A stretch of 63,773 nucleotides of DNA, the filler included, from Klebsormidium nitens (Eukaryota > Plantae > Klebsormidiophyceae): assembly GCA_000708835.1 (NCBI GenBank). It is 8 parts of 8 records of this genome, joined end to end, with 100 filler letters (N's around TTAATTAATTAA, not from the genome) between each part and the next. Parts side by side here need not be neighbours in the genome. Positions count along the whole stretch, not along the records: positions 54,299 to 57,833 come from DF238570.1; 7 more parts are not named here. The stretch is one strand, 5' to 3'. Shown in pieces: positions 4,863 to 57,833 of the stretch; positions within the stretch are counted from its first letter, which is position 1, and the number at the start of each line of letters is the position of its first letter. The translations under genes were made by a program, and so were the position numbers. The notes beneath the pieces were generated by a model. That model saw only the letters and a list, made by a program, of their open reading frames with translations. It was not told the DNA's origin and did no database searches.

Positions 4863-6761
4863 ATGGACGATGGGACGGATGGCTTCGAGGGGACGAAGAG
4901 GAAGCGCCCAGACATCGCTCTACGAATCCAACAGCGAAAGGGCAAAGAGACCTCCGTGGTACAGACGGGATAGAAGGCCCTCTGTCAGGACCTCGGGATC
5001 AGAGACCGGATCGAAGAGATCATCCCAGAAGTGAGTCGCATCCGAATCGAGACCTGCCTCCTGCTCAACCTGCACTTCATCCGCCTTCTGGAGGAAGGGA
5101 AGCCCATTCCCGTCATCGACCAGAACTTGGTCGGACGTGCGATGCAGTGCACATATGCAAAGAAAGCACAAGCGGACGCGGAACTCCAAGAGACATTCGA
5201 CCACCACTACCTACCTCTCTGCCCCAACCGTCCGATCAACAACTGCCTCCCTCGCATCACCAACGTACTCCTGGACCTGCGCAACCAGCTCCTCAGCAAC
5301 ATCAAGAATCACGTCGCGGTCCTCTTCCAGTCACGGCACCGGGCCTTCATGAAGCTCCTCCTCAGAGAAGCAGCCCCGGGCGTGCCTTTCTTCGAGGAAG
5401 CGGACGAGGATCTGGAGTCGTGCACCCGGCTGCTGACGACCGCCACCTTGTGGCGCCCGAACGAGAGCGTCCAAGAGCTGCTACCGGAGTATCCTCGCAT
5501 CTACGGAAGGATCCCAGAAGCTGCGATCGAGTGCCTACAAGATCTGGTCGACTCAGTCAGGCCGGAAGTCGGGCCGCTGCCTGCGGCGTCCCAGAGCAGA
5601 CCTCACCTCTACGTGCCCTGGATGAGGATCATCAGCGAGGAGTCCTCGGACCGACAGCTGCGATCATTCTCCCTCGTGCCTCACGCCTCCTTCTCTGCAC
5701 CTTTCATCGCTATCACTCCTACAACGTGGCCCGAGCTGCAACCAAAGAGCGGCAAGAGAAAGGCTCCGGGAGAGCTCCGCGATGCTTTTCCCTCCATCGG
5801 ACGGCTGGAGAGCGGTGGGAAGACCTTCGCAGACCGGATCACCACGGACGGAGTGTCCGCGAGCGTGTATTTCCCGGTGGAGAAGAGGACGCCCCCTCCG
5901 GAGGACAGAATGGTCCACATCCACCCCAAACAGCGCGTGGTGGGATTAGACCCAGGAAAGCATCCTGACTTCCTCACCGGCATCGCCGTGACCGGCGACT
6001 GGGATGGCATCTCGCATCAGGAGGAGGTCATCGGCCTGGGGACCCGGGACTTCTACCACCGAGCGGGATTCAAGAATCGGACGTTCCTCATGCACGCCTG
6101 GATGTCCAGAGACCTGGATGTGGCAGCCTTCAACAAGGATGCTCCTTCGGGGAACACCGTGAGTCTGGAGAAGTTCGGGAAGAGGGTGACCTTCGTCTCT
6201 GCGAACCTGTACTGTCTGGTACGCTTCCACACCGCGAGGAGGGTCCGAAAGCTGAGACGGCGAGTGACGATCAAGAAACAGATCGAGGTGGACAGAGCCT
6301 GCAAGAAAATCACGGCAGGGAAGAAAACCGTGGTGGCTTTCGGAGCAGCACAGGTGGATGCAGGCAGGACCAAGAGGCAGTGTGGGCCATGCGAGTCGGT
6401 GAAGAGACGACTCAGCAGCCACCACAAGGCGACGGTGGTCTTGATTGACGAGTTTAGGACGAGCCAGGTGTGCAGCACGTGCCACTCGGACGTCAACAAG
6501 TTCGCGGTGCTCAAGAGGCAGCGGGTGATGGAGGATGGACTCCCGACGGTGACCGAAGTAGGGCGTCGCGAGGACGAGGACGGAGGAGGGAGGACGAGCT
6601 ACAAGACGTGCCACAACGTGCGAGCGTGTACTAACCCGCTCTGTCGCATGGTGTGGAATAGAGACGTCAACGCAGCTCGTAGCATAGCTTGGATTTGTAT
6701 GAGCATAGCGAGAGGCGAGGGCAGGCCGGCAGAGTTCACGAGAGCAGGAGTCTGGGGCTGA
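4863..6761 (+). pseudogene. Fanzor (Fanzor1/TnpB-like RNA-guided RuvC nuclease), ~632 codons, with one in-frame TAG at 4971-4973
   Basis: RuvC-I VVGLDPG, RuvC-II LIDEFRTS, Zn finger CSTC...CTNPLC and RuvC-III WNRDVNAA. The upstream in-frame ATG at 4863 gives MDDGTDGFEGTKRKRP...KETSVVQTG*KALC, which aligns with the family-B N-terminus (ECTVVKTSLNSFC). Confidence 0.9.
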
Positions 6762-53400: not shown

Positions 53401-54299
53401 GAAGCTGCTTTGTAGCGGTACTTCGCGAACTGGGGAAAGTTGAGATGCAGGAACTTTTGGCAGAACGCGAAGTGGCCAAGTTGCACGCAACCTGACAGAT
53501 TGAAGATTCCAGATTGACAACTGTCCCATCACCGACATGGTCAATTTTATACTTTATCCTCGTCCGTCGGCAGCAGTCAAAAGGGGCATTCACGTCTTCT
53601 TTCTCTTTAGTTGAAGCCTCTCCTTGCATGCTTTCTGCTTTCACGCGTTTCCGCGCGCGCGCATGGCTTACTTCAAGAGGACCACGCCGCTCAGCCGCCT
53701 TCGCATTTCTGGAGCCGGGCGCTTCAGATTCACATTCAAATTTGGAACTTTGAGTCGGGCAAACGACAGGAAGCGTTCTGTTCCAGAACGAGTCACCCGT
53801 TACTTACACAGTATGCAAGCTGTCTCAAACGAGCCAGTGACCTCGATCGAGTGCAATGTGTATACAAGGCGCCTTCTGAAGTGGCTGTGAAGCTTTGAGA
53901 CTTTGAGAGCGCGCTTGCGACCTCAGAGGGGTCAGGATCAAGAAACTGCTGAGAGCATCCAGAGCCAAGAGAGTTGTAAAAATTAACACGTCCGAGAATT
54001 CTTGTTTACTTTGCAGATGGCCCTTGACTGGCCGCACGGTAACGCTGCAAGCGATGGTCGTCCGGCGGGAATGTGGTCTCGCTCTTCTCTTCCCAAAAGC
54101 GTACCGCTGAGCCCAAGATTTTTAATTCTTCATTACCTTCGACGTTTTTCTCATCAGCCTCAGTCTATCCGCTATCCACGGGTGGCCAAGATATGCCCNN
54201 NNNNNNNNNNNNNNNNNNNNNNNNNNNNNNNNNNNNNNNNNNTTAATTAATTAANNNNNNNNNNNNNNNNNNNNNNNNNNNNNNNNNNNNNNNNNNNNT

Positions 54300-55493
54300 G
54301 CTCGAAAGCTCGAGGACGACGCTAGGAGGGAGCGCGACAGGAGGGCGCTGAGACTCGCGGAGACCAAGGTTAGGACCCTCGAAGGGGTAGTGAAAGGAGC
54401 ACGTATTCAAGCTGCAAAACAATCCGCGCAGGCAGCTCTGACGGCGGCCCGGGAGGCACTCGCCGCAATCCGGCAGAGGATCGAAGCGGCGGAGCGCATC
54501 TGGACGAACCGAGGCAGTCAGGTCGCCGAGGAGGAGCGACGGAAGACCGACGCCCGATGGGCCCCGCCAGCCATGAAAGGACTTCAGAGCCGCATGTCTG
54601 AAGCGATTCGTAGCGGCGCGCCCGGATCAGCGAGACCCGCCGGAAAAGCCGCGAGCCGCACGGGTCCGCTGGAGGCCGACGTACAGCGGGTCGTGAATGA
54701 GTTCGCTCCGAACGCGCGGCGAACCGGGCGAAATGTGCCCCCGCAGGATGAAGGAGGGGCCGGGGATAAGCGTGAACGTGAGAGTGCGCCGAAGGAGAGC
54801 GCGCGGAATCGAGGAGTGAACGATGCGCGCGAGCAAGAAAACAGGAGGAAGAATCGAGAAAGAGAGGAGGTGCTGAAGCTGCGAGCGGACGCAAAGAAAG
54901 AGAGGTTAGCGAGACGAGAGGAGAAACCTACGTCGCAGCCCGCGATGCCCACTTGGATAGATAAATTGAAAAGACTCGTCGAAGGGGCGAAGCGAGAGGG
55001 GATCGCGAGGCGGCGATTGAAAGGGGACGAGAATCTCGACGCATTCTTGATTGCGAACGATCGGAACATACCACTCACCGCTCCGATCATCAAACAGTTA
55101 CTCCTCAAGTACCACCCCGACAAGGCATCACCGATGGGTCTCAATCGTAATCGCCGTAAGGTCGTAACACAATTGCTGATCGAGAGGCTGAAGAGCCCGG
55201 ACACGAAGGAGTCCATGGCTCCGCCCCATGATCCGGCTCCACAGCGGGCTCCTTCTCCTCGACCGACACCCCAGCGACCCTACCAATACCAGGCAGACGC
55301 GGAAACTGAAAACCAGGATGCACGTTCGTATTGGGGATGGGGATCGTTCTGGGGATCCCCACGCCGGAATGATCCGGGTTTCGACCCGCGACGAGGCGCC
55401 GCCCCACGGCGAGGACCTCCTCAAAATTCGGGCTACAAACAAGACATACCGAATGACTTTGAACAGCGACGGAGCCGATGGGCGTTTTCCTGA
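54300..55493 (+). CDS. Coiled-coil protein with a J-domain-like HPDK segment and a Pro/Arg-rich tail; 5' end in a gap
   Basis: Frame is open from the gap edge; PLTAPIIKQLLLKYHPDK is paralogous to 19057-19677. Confidence 0.7.
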   Translation, partial: ARKLEDDARRERDRRALRLAETKVRTLEGVVKGARIQAAKQSAQAALTAAREALAAIRQRIEAAERIWTNRGSQVAEEERRKTDARWAPPAMKGLQSRMSEAIRSGAPGSARPAGKAASRTGPLEADVQRVVNEFAPNARRTGRNVPPQDEGGAGDKRERESAPKESARNRGVNDAREQENRRKNREREEVLKLRADAKKERLARREEKPTSQPAMPTWIDKLKRLVEGAKREGIARRRLKGDENLDAFLIANDRNIPLTAPIIKQLLLKYHPDKASPMGLNRNRRKVVTQLLIERLKSPDTKESMAPPHDPAPQRAPSPRPTPQRPYQYQADAETENQDARSYWGWGSFWGSPRRNDPGFDPRRGAAPRRGPPQNSGYKQDIPNDFEQRRSRWAFS

Positions 55494-55689
55494 GTTGCTG
55501 CTGTACAGCTGGGAGCACCATCCCGCATATCACTAAGATCCGGTCTTCCCGGATCTTCGAGAGCTTGACGGAACGCGTCCGTCTTACGCGAGTTGGAGAG
55601 TATCTCTAGACGGCATATTTCGCGCATGGTGACTGCTATAGAGCGCAGCTACACATACAAGGCATCGAGAGCGCGTGTTGTCATAAGAA

Positions 55690-55858
55690 AGCTCGAAGTG
55701 GGGAATTATTACCATTTTCGCCCAAACTGTCGCCCGTACCGGGCGCTTCTTCGGACGGAAAATGAATAATAATACCGGATTGGGTCCATACGTGTACGGA
55801 CTGGTACCGGCTATCCACGAACCGCCGGGTTATGAAGCCCGGTATTCGCGAACAATCC
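55690..55858 (-). ncRNA. Predicted omegaRNA of Fanzor B (scaffold plus guide ATTCCCCACTTCGAGC); boundaries approximate
   Basis: Minus-strand stems GUCCGUAC/GUAUGGAC (a G-U pair forms only on this strand), CGCCCG/CGGGCG and a terminal CAGUUU...AAAAUG hairpin; the terminus is conserved with the mini-element at 15574. Confidence 0.65.
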
Positions 55859-57833
55859 TCACATGGTAACCGACCGGCAAAACTCCACCGGTCTGGCGCG
55901 GCCTTCGAGCCGCAGCCTCAACAGCCTCAGGATGTTCCGGGCAGCGTTCACGTCTCGGTTCACCGTCATGCCATTACAGCCACTGTTTCGGCAGTGGAGC
56001 ACACTGTGAACTTTGACGGTCTTCACCGCCCCATCCTTGCACCGCTTCTCCGAGTATTGATTGCGCAGCTGCGCCTTGCAATCGAAGTGCAGCTTGCTGG
56101 TCCTGAACTCGTCCATCGAGACCACCCTGCAATGCTTGCGGAGCTCTCGCTCCAACCGCTTCACGGGCCCAGAAGGAGATCCCTTGATGATGCCTCCGGA
56201 GTCCTTGTTAGACCAGTCTCCGAAGCCCACAACCGTCTTGTAACCCACTCGCCTCGTTATGGCCTTGCAGAGTGCATGCAGCTTCTTCTGAGCTGAGATG
56301 TACCGCTTGAACTTGAGCCCTCTGAATCCCTGCCTCATGTGGTAGACGAGGAGCATGTCGAGCCTGGGCAGCATAAAGTGCACGTAAGCGAGAAACTTGG
56401 TGCTCTCCGATGTCTTCTTGGTAGGCATGTTCCGGATGGCCTCGAGCACCTCCGGGCTCTTATCGTACCACCGCTTGATCTTGGCGTTGCTGTGCTTGTA
56501 CTTGGCGTCGCCATAGAATTCTCGAGTTGAGCACTTCAGCTTCTCTCCTTCTTCGTTGACCATGACAAAGAGGTCTCGCCTGCCTGGATCTAGGCCCCAC
56601 AGCTCCTCTTCTCCCGTGAGGTCGGGGAGCGTTGCTTCGCCTGGGGCTTGCCTGGGTTTTGGCTTCCTCAGCACGATGCAGACGGCCTTCCCGTCCGTGA
56701 GGATCTCGCCTGCGAACTTGCGGTTGCACGTCTCGAACTTTGCGATGTCGAAGAGGTCCCTCCAGTAGTCGTCAGCCACCTTCCTGAACTCCGCTCCCGA
56801 GGCTGGAAGCTTGACCCCTCCCCTCTTGAGAAGCCCATAGAGTCCGTTGGTGCACATCTTGAGATGATTGCACTCGAAGCCCCTCTTCGTAGGTAGGAGG
56901 CTGAAGAGCCTCAGCTGCTTACCTTTCTTCAGTTCTTCTTCTGTCAGGGGGTGATGCGACTCCATGTAGCGCAGGAACATGTATTGCATTGGCATGAGTA
57001 TGTGAGGGGTGGAGTCTGCCCTACCAGTAGTGGCTTTCGGAAGCATGGCTCGGTACCTCAAAACCAGTGGGTCGTCGCCTTCGTACTCATCAGCGAACAT
57101 GTCCCGCATCTTGGAATAGCATGAAGGGCCGTCGAGGGAGTACTCGTGCTTCAGGTAGCGCTTGAAGCGCTTGTAGAAGTTGGTGGCGATAGAGTTCTTG
57201 GTGCACGTGGCCATCTGAAGGCTCGCATTCTGGTACCAGCCTGAAGAGAGATGCTCACAGTCCGGATGCAGACAGTCTGCAGGGCGTGATGCCAGGTAAA
57301 GCTCTACGGTCTCCCTGAGGTAGAGGTCTTTGACGGAGCTCTTCTTCCTACCGGCCACACTGACGGCAGAGAGGCAGTTGTAGAAGAAGGGTTGGTCCAG
57401 AGGTGGAACTTCGCGACCCAACTCAGACATCCGTAGTACATGAAGGTTAGCAAGGATGTAGGCTTCACAGATAGCCTTATTCACTTCCTTGAGCACGCTC
57501 TCCAGAGGGAGGGCCCTGGCAGCCTCCTTGCAGAAGCTGTTCAGGCTGGTCTTGACCACGGTGCATTCGGTCTCTTTGTTCCTCAGGGCCCGGAGCTTGA
57601 CGTCCTCTCGGGTCCTAGGCTCTTTGAAGAGCTTGCTCACGTAGGCCAGGCATTCATGGTGGAGAGCGACGTCGGGGGGCTTCTTTGGTGGCATCAGACC
57701 ACCCCTATGCGTCTCCTTAGGAAAATAGATCTCGGGAATTTTACGCACGGCCCAGGTTATGTATACGAGCCTAGCGCTTATAATGTCGGACTCTCGTATA
57801 CATCAACCAAACAGGTGCTTATATGCAACAATC
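55709..57833 (-). mobile_element. Family-B Fanzor-carrying TIR element (left end lost in a gap)
   Basis: Right end TTACCATTTTCGCCCAAACTGTCGCC with TA at 55707-55708, shared with the mini-element 15574-16036. Confidence 0.75.
55859..57694 (-). CDS. Fanzor (Fanzor1/TnpB-like RNA-guided RuvC nuclease), 611 aa from the first ATG, apparently intact
   Basis: WGLDPG (RuvC-I), SMDEFRTS (RuvC-II), HFDC...CRNSGC (Zn site) and VNRDVNAARNI (RuvC-III); VVGFGDWS and GPVKRL motifs; N-terminal MPPKK NLS-like sequence. Confidence 0.93.
   Translation of the reverse strand: MPPKKPPDVALHHECLAYVSKLFKEPRTREDVKLRALRNKETECTVVKTSLNSFCKEAARALPLESVLKEVNKAICEAYILANLHVLRMSELGREVPPLDQPFFYNCLSAVSVAGRKKSSVKDLYLRETVELYLASRPADCLHPDCEHLSSGWYQNASLQMATCTKNSIATNFYKRFKRYLKHEYSLDGPSCYSKMRDMFADEYEGDDPLVLRYRAMLPKATTGRADSTPHILMPMQYMFLRYMESHHPLTEEELKKGKQLRLFSLLPTKRGFECNHLKMCTNGLYGLLKRGGVKLPASGAEFRKVADDYWRDLFDIAKFETCNRKFAGEILTDGKAVCIVLRKPKPRQAPGEATLPDLTGEEELWGLDPGRRDLFVMVNEEGEKLKCSTREFYGDAKYKHSNAKIKRWYDKSPEVLEAIRNMPTKKTSESTKFLAYVHFMLPRLDMLLVYHMRQGFRGLKFKRYISAQKKLHALCKAITRRVGYKTVVGFGDWSNKDSGGIIKGSPSGPVKRLERELRKHCRVVSMDEFRTSKLHFDCKAQLRNQYSEKRCKDGAVKTVKVHSVLHCRNSGCNGMTVNRDVNAARNILRLLRLRLEGRARPVEFCRSVTM

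Follow-up and report, generated by a model that had tools for sequence, protein, structure and literature searches.

A Fanzor1 element with a predicted omegaRNA in giant-virus-like DNA of Klebsormidium nitens

The 3,535-bp Klebsormidium nitens contig DF238570.1, which in its entirety forms positions 54299-57833 of the window (the whole 63,773-nucleotide stretch of joined K. nitens sequence analysed here), encodes an apparent RNA-guided nuclease. The best explanation of the data as a whole is that the contig very probably carries an intact Fanzor1 gene with its omegaRNA, borne by a non-autonomous Tc1/mariner-type element in giant-virus-derived DNA. The element belongs with the IS630-like DNA transposons, measures 2.19 kb when complete and has the intact Fanzor1 as its only gene. 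It was compared with copies at four further K. nitens loci (L001, L003, L044 and L045), with two Joint Genome Institute (JGI) metagenome contigs showing 77-80% nucleotide identity to it (L002 and L004) and with four relatives at about 55% amino acid identity (L040-L043).

The Fanzor1 protein and its characterised relatives

The Fanzor1 open reading frame (ORF) occupies 55859..57694 on the minus strand, with the ATG at 57694 and the stop codon at 55861-55859, and encodes 611 amino acids. Counted from a GTG codon, the frame would span 55859..57748 (-), the first ATG being that at 57694, and the same ATG serves as the start in all copies (MPPKKPPD). The product is 100% identical to GAQ93531.1 (KFL_016210020, 'hypothetical protein'). 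The gene model of the latter looks wrong, as it includes a spurious terminal intron leading to ...SVTICAL; the uninterrupted frame ends in ...SVTM followed by the stop codon, matching the other copies.

The original prediction of a 611-residue protein with three RuvC motifs and a zinc site holds in every part. The motifs GLDPGRRD, MDEFRTS and NRDVNAA contain the catalytic residues D369 (RuvC-I), E529 (RuvC-II) and D581 (RuvC-III), and between RuvC-II and RuvC-III a zinc finger of the form (H/C)x2C...Cx4C, comprising H536, C539, C568 and C573, is predicted to bind metal. In an alignment of 50 homologues extending down to 29% identity, D369, G371, G490, G492, E529, S533, C539, C568, C573, R580, D581 and N583 are all invariant, and position 536 is occupied by H or C (32/18). 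The canonical site of the RuvC-II glutamate reads VVGFGDWS, including the invariant G490 and G492, and E529 lies in the DEFRTS motif 39 residues downstream. A 'rearranged' active site of this type, in which the canonical glutamate is replaced by G or P and an alternative glutamate is found about 45 residues downstream, has been described for Fanzors (PMC10530073).

Assignment of the protein to Fanzor1, where a Fanzor nuclease had been proposed, is supported by sequence, profile and fold. The sole match in a phmmer search of the PDB sequences is the Spizellomyces punctatus Fanzor1 (E 1.6e-10), and a profile built from the 50 homologues scores most strongly on Fanzor1 proteins (SpuFz1 2.2e-34, PpFz1 2.9e-25, GtFz1 2.3e-23), with the mimivirus Fanzor2 matching weakly at 5e-6. 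The AlphaFold2 model has a mean predicted local distance difference test score (pLDDT) of 88.3 and a predicted template modelling score (pTM) of 0.84. When searched with Foldseek it returned SpuFz (9.6e-25, template modelling (TM) score 0.68), PpFz (5e-23) and GtFz (1.5e-20), the Fanzor1 structures aligning over the full length of the model (TM 0.61-0.69). The best match outside Fanzor1 reached 2.8e-7 (TM 0.25) and the Fanzor2 structure 9b0l 6e-6, while Cas12f, TnpB and Fanzor2 structures cover the RuvC core alone (TM at most 0.31). The motifs of D369, E529 and D581 align with those of SpuFz1 bearing D383, E541 and D606, the roles of which have been reported (PMC10432273).

A Fanzor1 from this alga is already known, and the suggestion that the present member may not be characterised is probably wrong. 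KnFNuc (Jiang et al. 2023, Sci Adv) is a K. nitens Fanzor1 present in five copies and devoid of introns, which bound an RNA derived from 3' non-coding sequence that adjoins the right end, recognised TTA as its target-adjacent motif (TAM), made focused cuts in both strands and edited human cells at up to 2% (PMC10530073). The family described here fits that account in species, Fanzor1 type, lack of introns and copy number (five published copies, and five NCBI proteins in the 90% cluster here), as well as in a predicted RNA abutting the right end, and the published TTA TAM equals the invariant T-TA at the left end of the present element. The match is one of description, and the protein tested may be another of these copies or, less likely, a member of another family. 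The latter is improbable though by no means negligible; in that event the present protein would add a member to a known kind of Fanzor1. As a tool it adds little, since RNA guidance, the use of TTA and the editing of human cells have all been demonstrated for a K. nitens Fanzor1 (PMC10530073).

Another close system is SpuFz1 of Spizellomyces punctatus (PDB 8gkh, 9ceu; Saito et al. 2023), which shares the full-length fold, and the IDPN, DEYKTS and NRD motifs of which align with the catalytic motifs of this protein. Its element likewise has inverted repeats of about 30 nt, and its TAM, CATA, relates to a conserved CA just outside the left repeat, analogous to the T-TA giving TTA here (PMC10432273). 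The two proteins are, however, only 17-18% identical and differ in TAM, the first zinc knuckle of SpuFz1 is CxxC rather than HxxC, and no link to a mariner transposase has been described for Spu-1.

More broadly, the family comprises 2,531 cluster representatives (E up to 0.001), with members in Coccomyxa, Asterochloris and many oomycetes. A scan of the IMG/VR viral contigs with the protein found no relative, and a profile scan of metagenomes returned distant relatives only (23-32% identity over most of the protein, and higher in short pieces only), which are too distant to be of use for RNA covariation.

Element termini and the transposase link

The right end of the element is defined by five copies (L002, L003, L004, L044 and L045) which lose similarity to the contig immediately after 55706, the last common bases being ...GGTAATAA and the flanks beyond them being unrelated. 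It consists of a 28-nt terminal inverted repeat (TIR) at 55706..55733 (-), 24 of the 28 positions of which are complementary to the left end, reading TTATTACCGTTTTCG.... The left end was observed in L001, L003, L004, L044 and L045 only, and the pairing of the repeats was verified in these other copies. Complete copies measure 2,187-2,189 bp, with pairwise similarity starting and stopping exactly at the termini. On DF238570.1 the left TIR is missing because the contig edge at 57833 cuts the element about 59 nt inside its left terminus; base 57833 corresponds to position 6270 of L003, where the left end begins at 6211. The 5' leader of the element that remains on the contig, at 57695..57833 (-), is conserved among the K. 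nitens copies. The nuclease had been taken as apparently intact, and the sequence downstream of it as ending at a TIR and a TA. This is borne out for the nuclease ORF and for the 28-nt right TIR, and the TA fits the duplications of Fanzor1 mariner elements (PMC3627910), but the element as such is incomplete, the left partner of the repeat lying some 59 nt past the contig edge.

The TA at 55707..55708, to which no strand applies, is a candidate Tc1/mariner target-site duplication. All left ends begin with T-TA-T and all right ends finish with A-TA-A (eight left and ten right ends), so that the TA sits within an invariant T-TA...TA-A and is inseparable from the repeat itself. No duplication is visible outside the termini of the compared copies. 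Two readings fit the invariant ends: duplication of a TA within a TTAA target, or bases of the repeat itself.

The link to Tc1/mariner is provided by two of the relatives, L043 and L040, in which a gene for a PF13358 DDE_3 (IS630/Tc1-like) transposase is located between the left TIR and the Fanzor gene. A remnant of DDE_3 is retained in L002 and none is left in the present copy; the element in the window is therefore a non-autonomous derivative of a Tc1/mariner-type element. The autonomous relatives (L043 1187-4499 and L040 1116-4463, about 3.3 kb each) contain, in order, a left repeat, DDE_3, Fanzor1, a short omegaRNA region and a right repeat, and their termini read TTATAACC, as compared with TTATTACC in the K. 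nitens elements.

Fanzor1 proteins in Tc/mariner elements with TA duplications have been reported from Pythium ultimum and Phaeocystis globosa virus (Bao and Jurka 2013, PMC3627910). The elements PUl-1 and PUl-4 of the former and PGv-1 of the latter contain Fanzor1 alone or together with a mariner-like transposase between TIRs with TA ends, and proteins of Globisporangium (Pythium) ultimum are about 50% identical to that studied here. Their hosts are an oomycete and a giant virus, as against a streptophyte alga and giant-virus-like contigs, and in the present element the bases flanking the TA are also invariant (T-TA...TA-A). Bacterial TnpB elements of the IS200/IS605 and IS607 groups similarly encode a RuvC nuclease, derive a guide RNA from the right end and flank, and have the TAM beside the left end. 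They differ from this element in the presence of TnpA and in ends formed by subterminal hairpins rather than TIRs; here, moreover, the RuvC-II glutamate is rearranged, the recognition (REC) region is larger and the scaffold is mostly downstream of the ORF. An IS200/IS605 or IS607 TnpB element was considered and rejected, TnpA (Y1 or serine recombinase) being absent from all loci and the ends being TIRs.

The predicted omegaRNA scaffold and native guide

The 153-nt 3' untranslated region (UTR) at 55706..55858 (-) is the predicted omegaRNA scaffold, and a conserved, strand-specific RNA structure running to the precisely defined right end is supported. It comprises, on the minus strand, hairpin 1 (approximately 55854-55812), hairpin A (approximately 55811-55774) and a long composite stem (55772-55706), in which the last eight nucleotides of the right TIR, GGUAAUAA, pair with the internal UUAUUAUU at 55772-55765. 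The coding-strand fold (164 nt) has a free energy of -69.7 kcal/mol (z -4.58), equalled by none of 200 shuffles, while the opposite strand folds at -51.6 kcal/mol (z -1.44). About 150 nt of structured sequence downstream of the ORF had thus been correctly proposed. The accompanying argument for direction, which invoked a G-U pair on the coding strand, holds more broadly than stated: G-U pairs account for five of the 39 in the 3' domain, and in all ten homologues the sense fold is better than the antisense by 7-20 kcal/mol, with 3-8 G-U pairs that become A-C on the other strand.

Comparison of the copies points in the same direction. The consensus fold of the six close copies has 57 pairs, in which several one-sided C/U or A/G changes retain pairing through G-U, and the linked haplotypes TCA...ATG and CGT...ACG, found in six of the six, amount to an A-U to G-C change with a one-base shift. 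The UTR is 84% identical between the contig and L002 despite an ORF synonymous divergence (dS) of about 1.2, indicating that it is under constraint. As alignment of the ten sequences by MAFFT and RNAalifold misaligned the inner helices of the distant relatives, each sequence was folded by itself. Folded singly, L040-L043 repeat the K. nitens layout: first a GCCGG/CCGGY hairpin, then, after a single unpaired base, a long composite stem, which an internal UUAUURYY closes by pairing with the terminal GGUAAUAA; their inner helices are unrelated in sequence, and the first hairpin of L040 has a G-C to U-A change. The 3' architecture of this copy recurs in ten homologues, the internal sequence being unrelated in four of these, and a covariance model built from the close copies places L040, L041 and L043 at exactly the expected coordinates.

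Over the last 110 nt before the right end, the relatives L040-L043 differ from the K. nitens clade: their ORF extends about 25 residues further, into the first hairpins of the omegaRNA. In the K. nitens clade an earlier stop leaves the whole scaffold non-coding and 3' of the ORF, and hairpin A has an extra apical stem. Rfam contains no family for the 3' UTR, and its only match, Fungi_SRP (E 0.96), was dismissed as chance.

The predicted native guide, at 55686..55705 (-), is the flank 3' of the right end, TTCCCCACTTCGAGCTTTCT; this flank differs in every copy, and the native guide would differ with it. Beyond the right end, variation between the copies begins at 55705, from which the flank reads TTCCCCACTTCGAGC..., and 55706 is an invariant A, leaving the junction between scaffold and guide ambiguous by 1-3 nt. 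A guide drawn from the flank abutting the right end, as originally proposed, thus stands, while its start at 55706 or 55705 is not fixed by the sequence. If the TA is a duplication, the unoccupied site would read T-TA-A followed by the flank, so that the A and the flank would come directly after a TTA TAM. This is the register of the original prediction (start at 55706), which would agree with a TTA TAM combined with TA duplication. The invariant T-TA at the left end likewise fits the TTA TAM of KnFNuc.

Giant-virus context, mechanism and alternative readings

All examined copies of the element sit in giant-virus-like DNA. On DF238570.1 itself, the neighbour is a convergent ORF at 54300..55493 (+), outside the element and cut by the contig edge. 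It is an orphan rich in charged and coiled-coil-like sequence, with a KYHPDK motif reminiscent of the J domain and no match in Pfam (E up to 1). A single homologue, 80% identical, was identified; the JGI contigs in which it lies are dense and intronless, look like giant-virus DNA and place it next to genes for topoisomerase II, thioredoxin and YqaJ. Among the other K. nitens copies, L044 (1-13088) has a ribonucleotide reductase with an intein and a Peptidase_S74 protein as its flanking genes, and L045 (5001-8046) is annotated as fused to the thymidylate synthase ThyX. L002 (1-13917) and L004 (1-13467) are dense, intronless contigs in which the element lies among TFIIS, cap methyltransferase, patatin and ribonucleotide reductase genes. 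Endogenisation of giant viruses in K. nitens has been reported (PMC11244446), and methylation of viral genes and insertions in this alga is likewise reported in the literature.

Five K. nitens proteins at NCBI fall in the 90% cluster, and there are others, which are more divergent or fragmentary. The copies are 94-96% identical in protein, and 611-codon frames are open in the present contig, L044 and L045. Two frameshifts interrupt L003, while the ORF of L001 (KFL_009820010) contains an assembly gap of 651 N (1377-2027), and just ahead of the stop codon the sequence of L001 departs from that of every other copy, so that L001 is without the omegaRNA region. Among the K. nitens copies the ratio of nonsynonymous to synonymous divergence (dN/dS) is 0.06-0.07 at a dS of 0.33-0.45, and against L002 it is 0.09-0.11. 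Synonymous divergence of this extent speaks against the copies having recently multiplied by transposition in the alga. We tentatively consider, as a possibility short of probable, that the Fanzor1-mariner element belongs primarily to the mobile DNA of giant viruses and that the K. nitens copies came with several endogenised viral genomes rather than through recent algal transposition. If so, the natural arena of the nuclease would be virus-against-virus homing inside viral factories, and the published reading of the multiple copies as recent host mobility would have to be qualified.

By analogy with TnpB and Fanzor work, transcription would cross the gene, the 153-nt 3' UTR and the right TIR into the flank, and the resulting omegaRNA would consist of the structured UTR as scaffold and of roughly 16-20 nt of flank, from 55705 or 55706, as guide. 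The protein-RNA complex would recognise TTA and a match to the guide and would cut both strands by means of D369, E529 and D581, in the manner shown for KnFNuc. Its target would be an unoccupied or excised site (T-TA-A plus flank), at which repair from an occupied copy would restore the element, while movement would depend on DDE_3 transposase supplied in trans by the related autonomous elements. This mechanism is well grounded by homology; the homing role and activity in the alga are inferred.

Several observations weigh against an intact, guide-dependent Fanzor1 system of this kind. A homing role has been shown for bacterial TnpB only. The protein scores just below the gathering score of the Pfam Cas12f1-like TNB family (24.8 against 26.3 bits) and far below the cut-off of the NCBIfam guided_TnpB model (23.1 against 100), both of which were built mainly on prokaryotic proteins. 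The MAFFT alignment of the six close copies holds no double compensatory change, and the covariance model finds L040, L041 and L043 with weak E values (0.8-2.9) and misses L042. An empty site was sought in the loci L046 and L047, which carry the homologue of the neighbouring gene, and none was found. As their similarity to the contig ends at 55500, about 205 nt before the insertion, these loci are uninformative on the TA duplication, and both the duplication and the guide register remain putative. Finally, the copy lies in DNA reported as methylated viral insertions and may therefore be silent in the alga.

This last point leads to the most serious alternative, in which an endogenised giant virus carries the element as a silenced passenger, the gene and RNA being kept intact only by past selection in the virus and nothing being expressed or active in K. 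nitens. We regard this as a real contender, if somewhat less than an even prospect. It is favoured by the viral company kept by the neighbouring ORF's homologue and by the other K. nitens copies, by the reported endogenisation and methylation, and by the dS and low dN/dS of the copies, which suggest that the copies diverged, under selection, outside the algal genome or before they were part of it. Three K. nitens ORFs are nevertheless still open, a KnFNuc protein from K. nitens sequence is active in vitro (PMC10530073), and silencing would address where the system acts, not what it is.

It is very unlikely that the structure at the 3' end is instead a feature of the DNA, such as transposase binding sites or a TIR cruciform. 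The last 28 nt are indeed the TIR, and the terminal sequence of the left end recurs in the internal UUAUUAYY that pairs with the terminus. The conserved structure, however, reaches about 125 nt beyond the repeat, each of the ten homologues shows the strand preference and the G-U pairs, and RNA from the corresponding region co-purifies with KnFNuc and with other Fanzors (PMC10530073). A nuclease-dead or repurposed TnpB-like protein, for example an RNA-guided regulator, might be read from the glycine at the canonical RuvC-II position (GFGDW), but is equally improbable, given that this replacement with the alternative glutamate E529 about 40 residues downstream is the normal arrangement of active Fanzors, that mutation of the alternative glutamate in ApmFNuc abolished cleavage (PMC10530073) and that all three acidic residues are invariant.

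The reading of an intact Fanzor1 and omegaRNA on a non-autonomous mariner-type element adds to the published account the exact right-end boundary and conserved omegaRNA architecture for this clade, the connection, through related autonomous elements, to a DDE_3 transposase and the matching of the invariant left-end T-TA to the published TAM. It also adds the finding that the examined copies all lie in giant-virus-like DNA and have diverged under strong purifying selection, which bears on where Fanzor1 acts in nature.

Some minor observations concern the annotation of individual copies. The frameshifted L003 is split into two gene models, one of which carries the UniRef name 'protein kinase-like domain', and the model of GAQ93111.1, a fusion to ThyX, looks wrong. 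An apparent 650-bp insertion in L001, considered as a transposon, was rejected on the grounds that it is the assembly gap of 651 N. Three additional TIR-like ends are found in L004 (11129-11156, 12902-12931 and 12972-13001), one right-end-like and two left-end-like. These have neither a Fanzor gene nor a full omegaRNA and may represent miniature derivatives or solo ends. Finally, P0010, a protein of 648 aa with 55% identity to this Fanzor1, is labelled as a transposase from a Thermoplasmata archaeon metagenome-assembled genome; the 3.3-kb contig that encodes it is most likely eukaryotic or viral and mis-binned.

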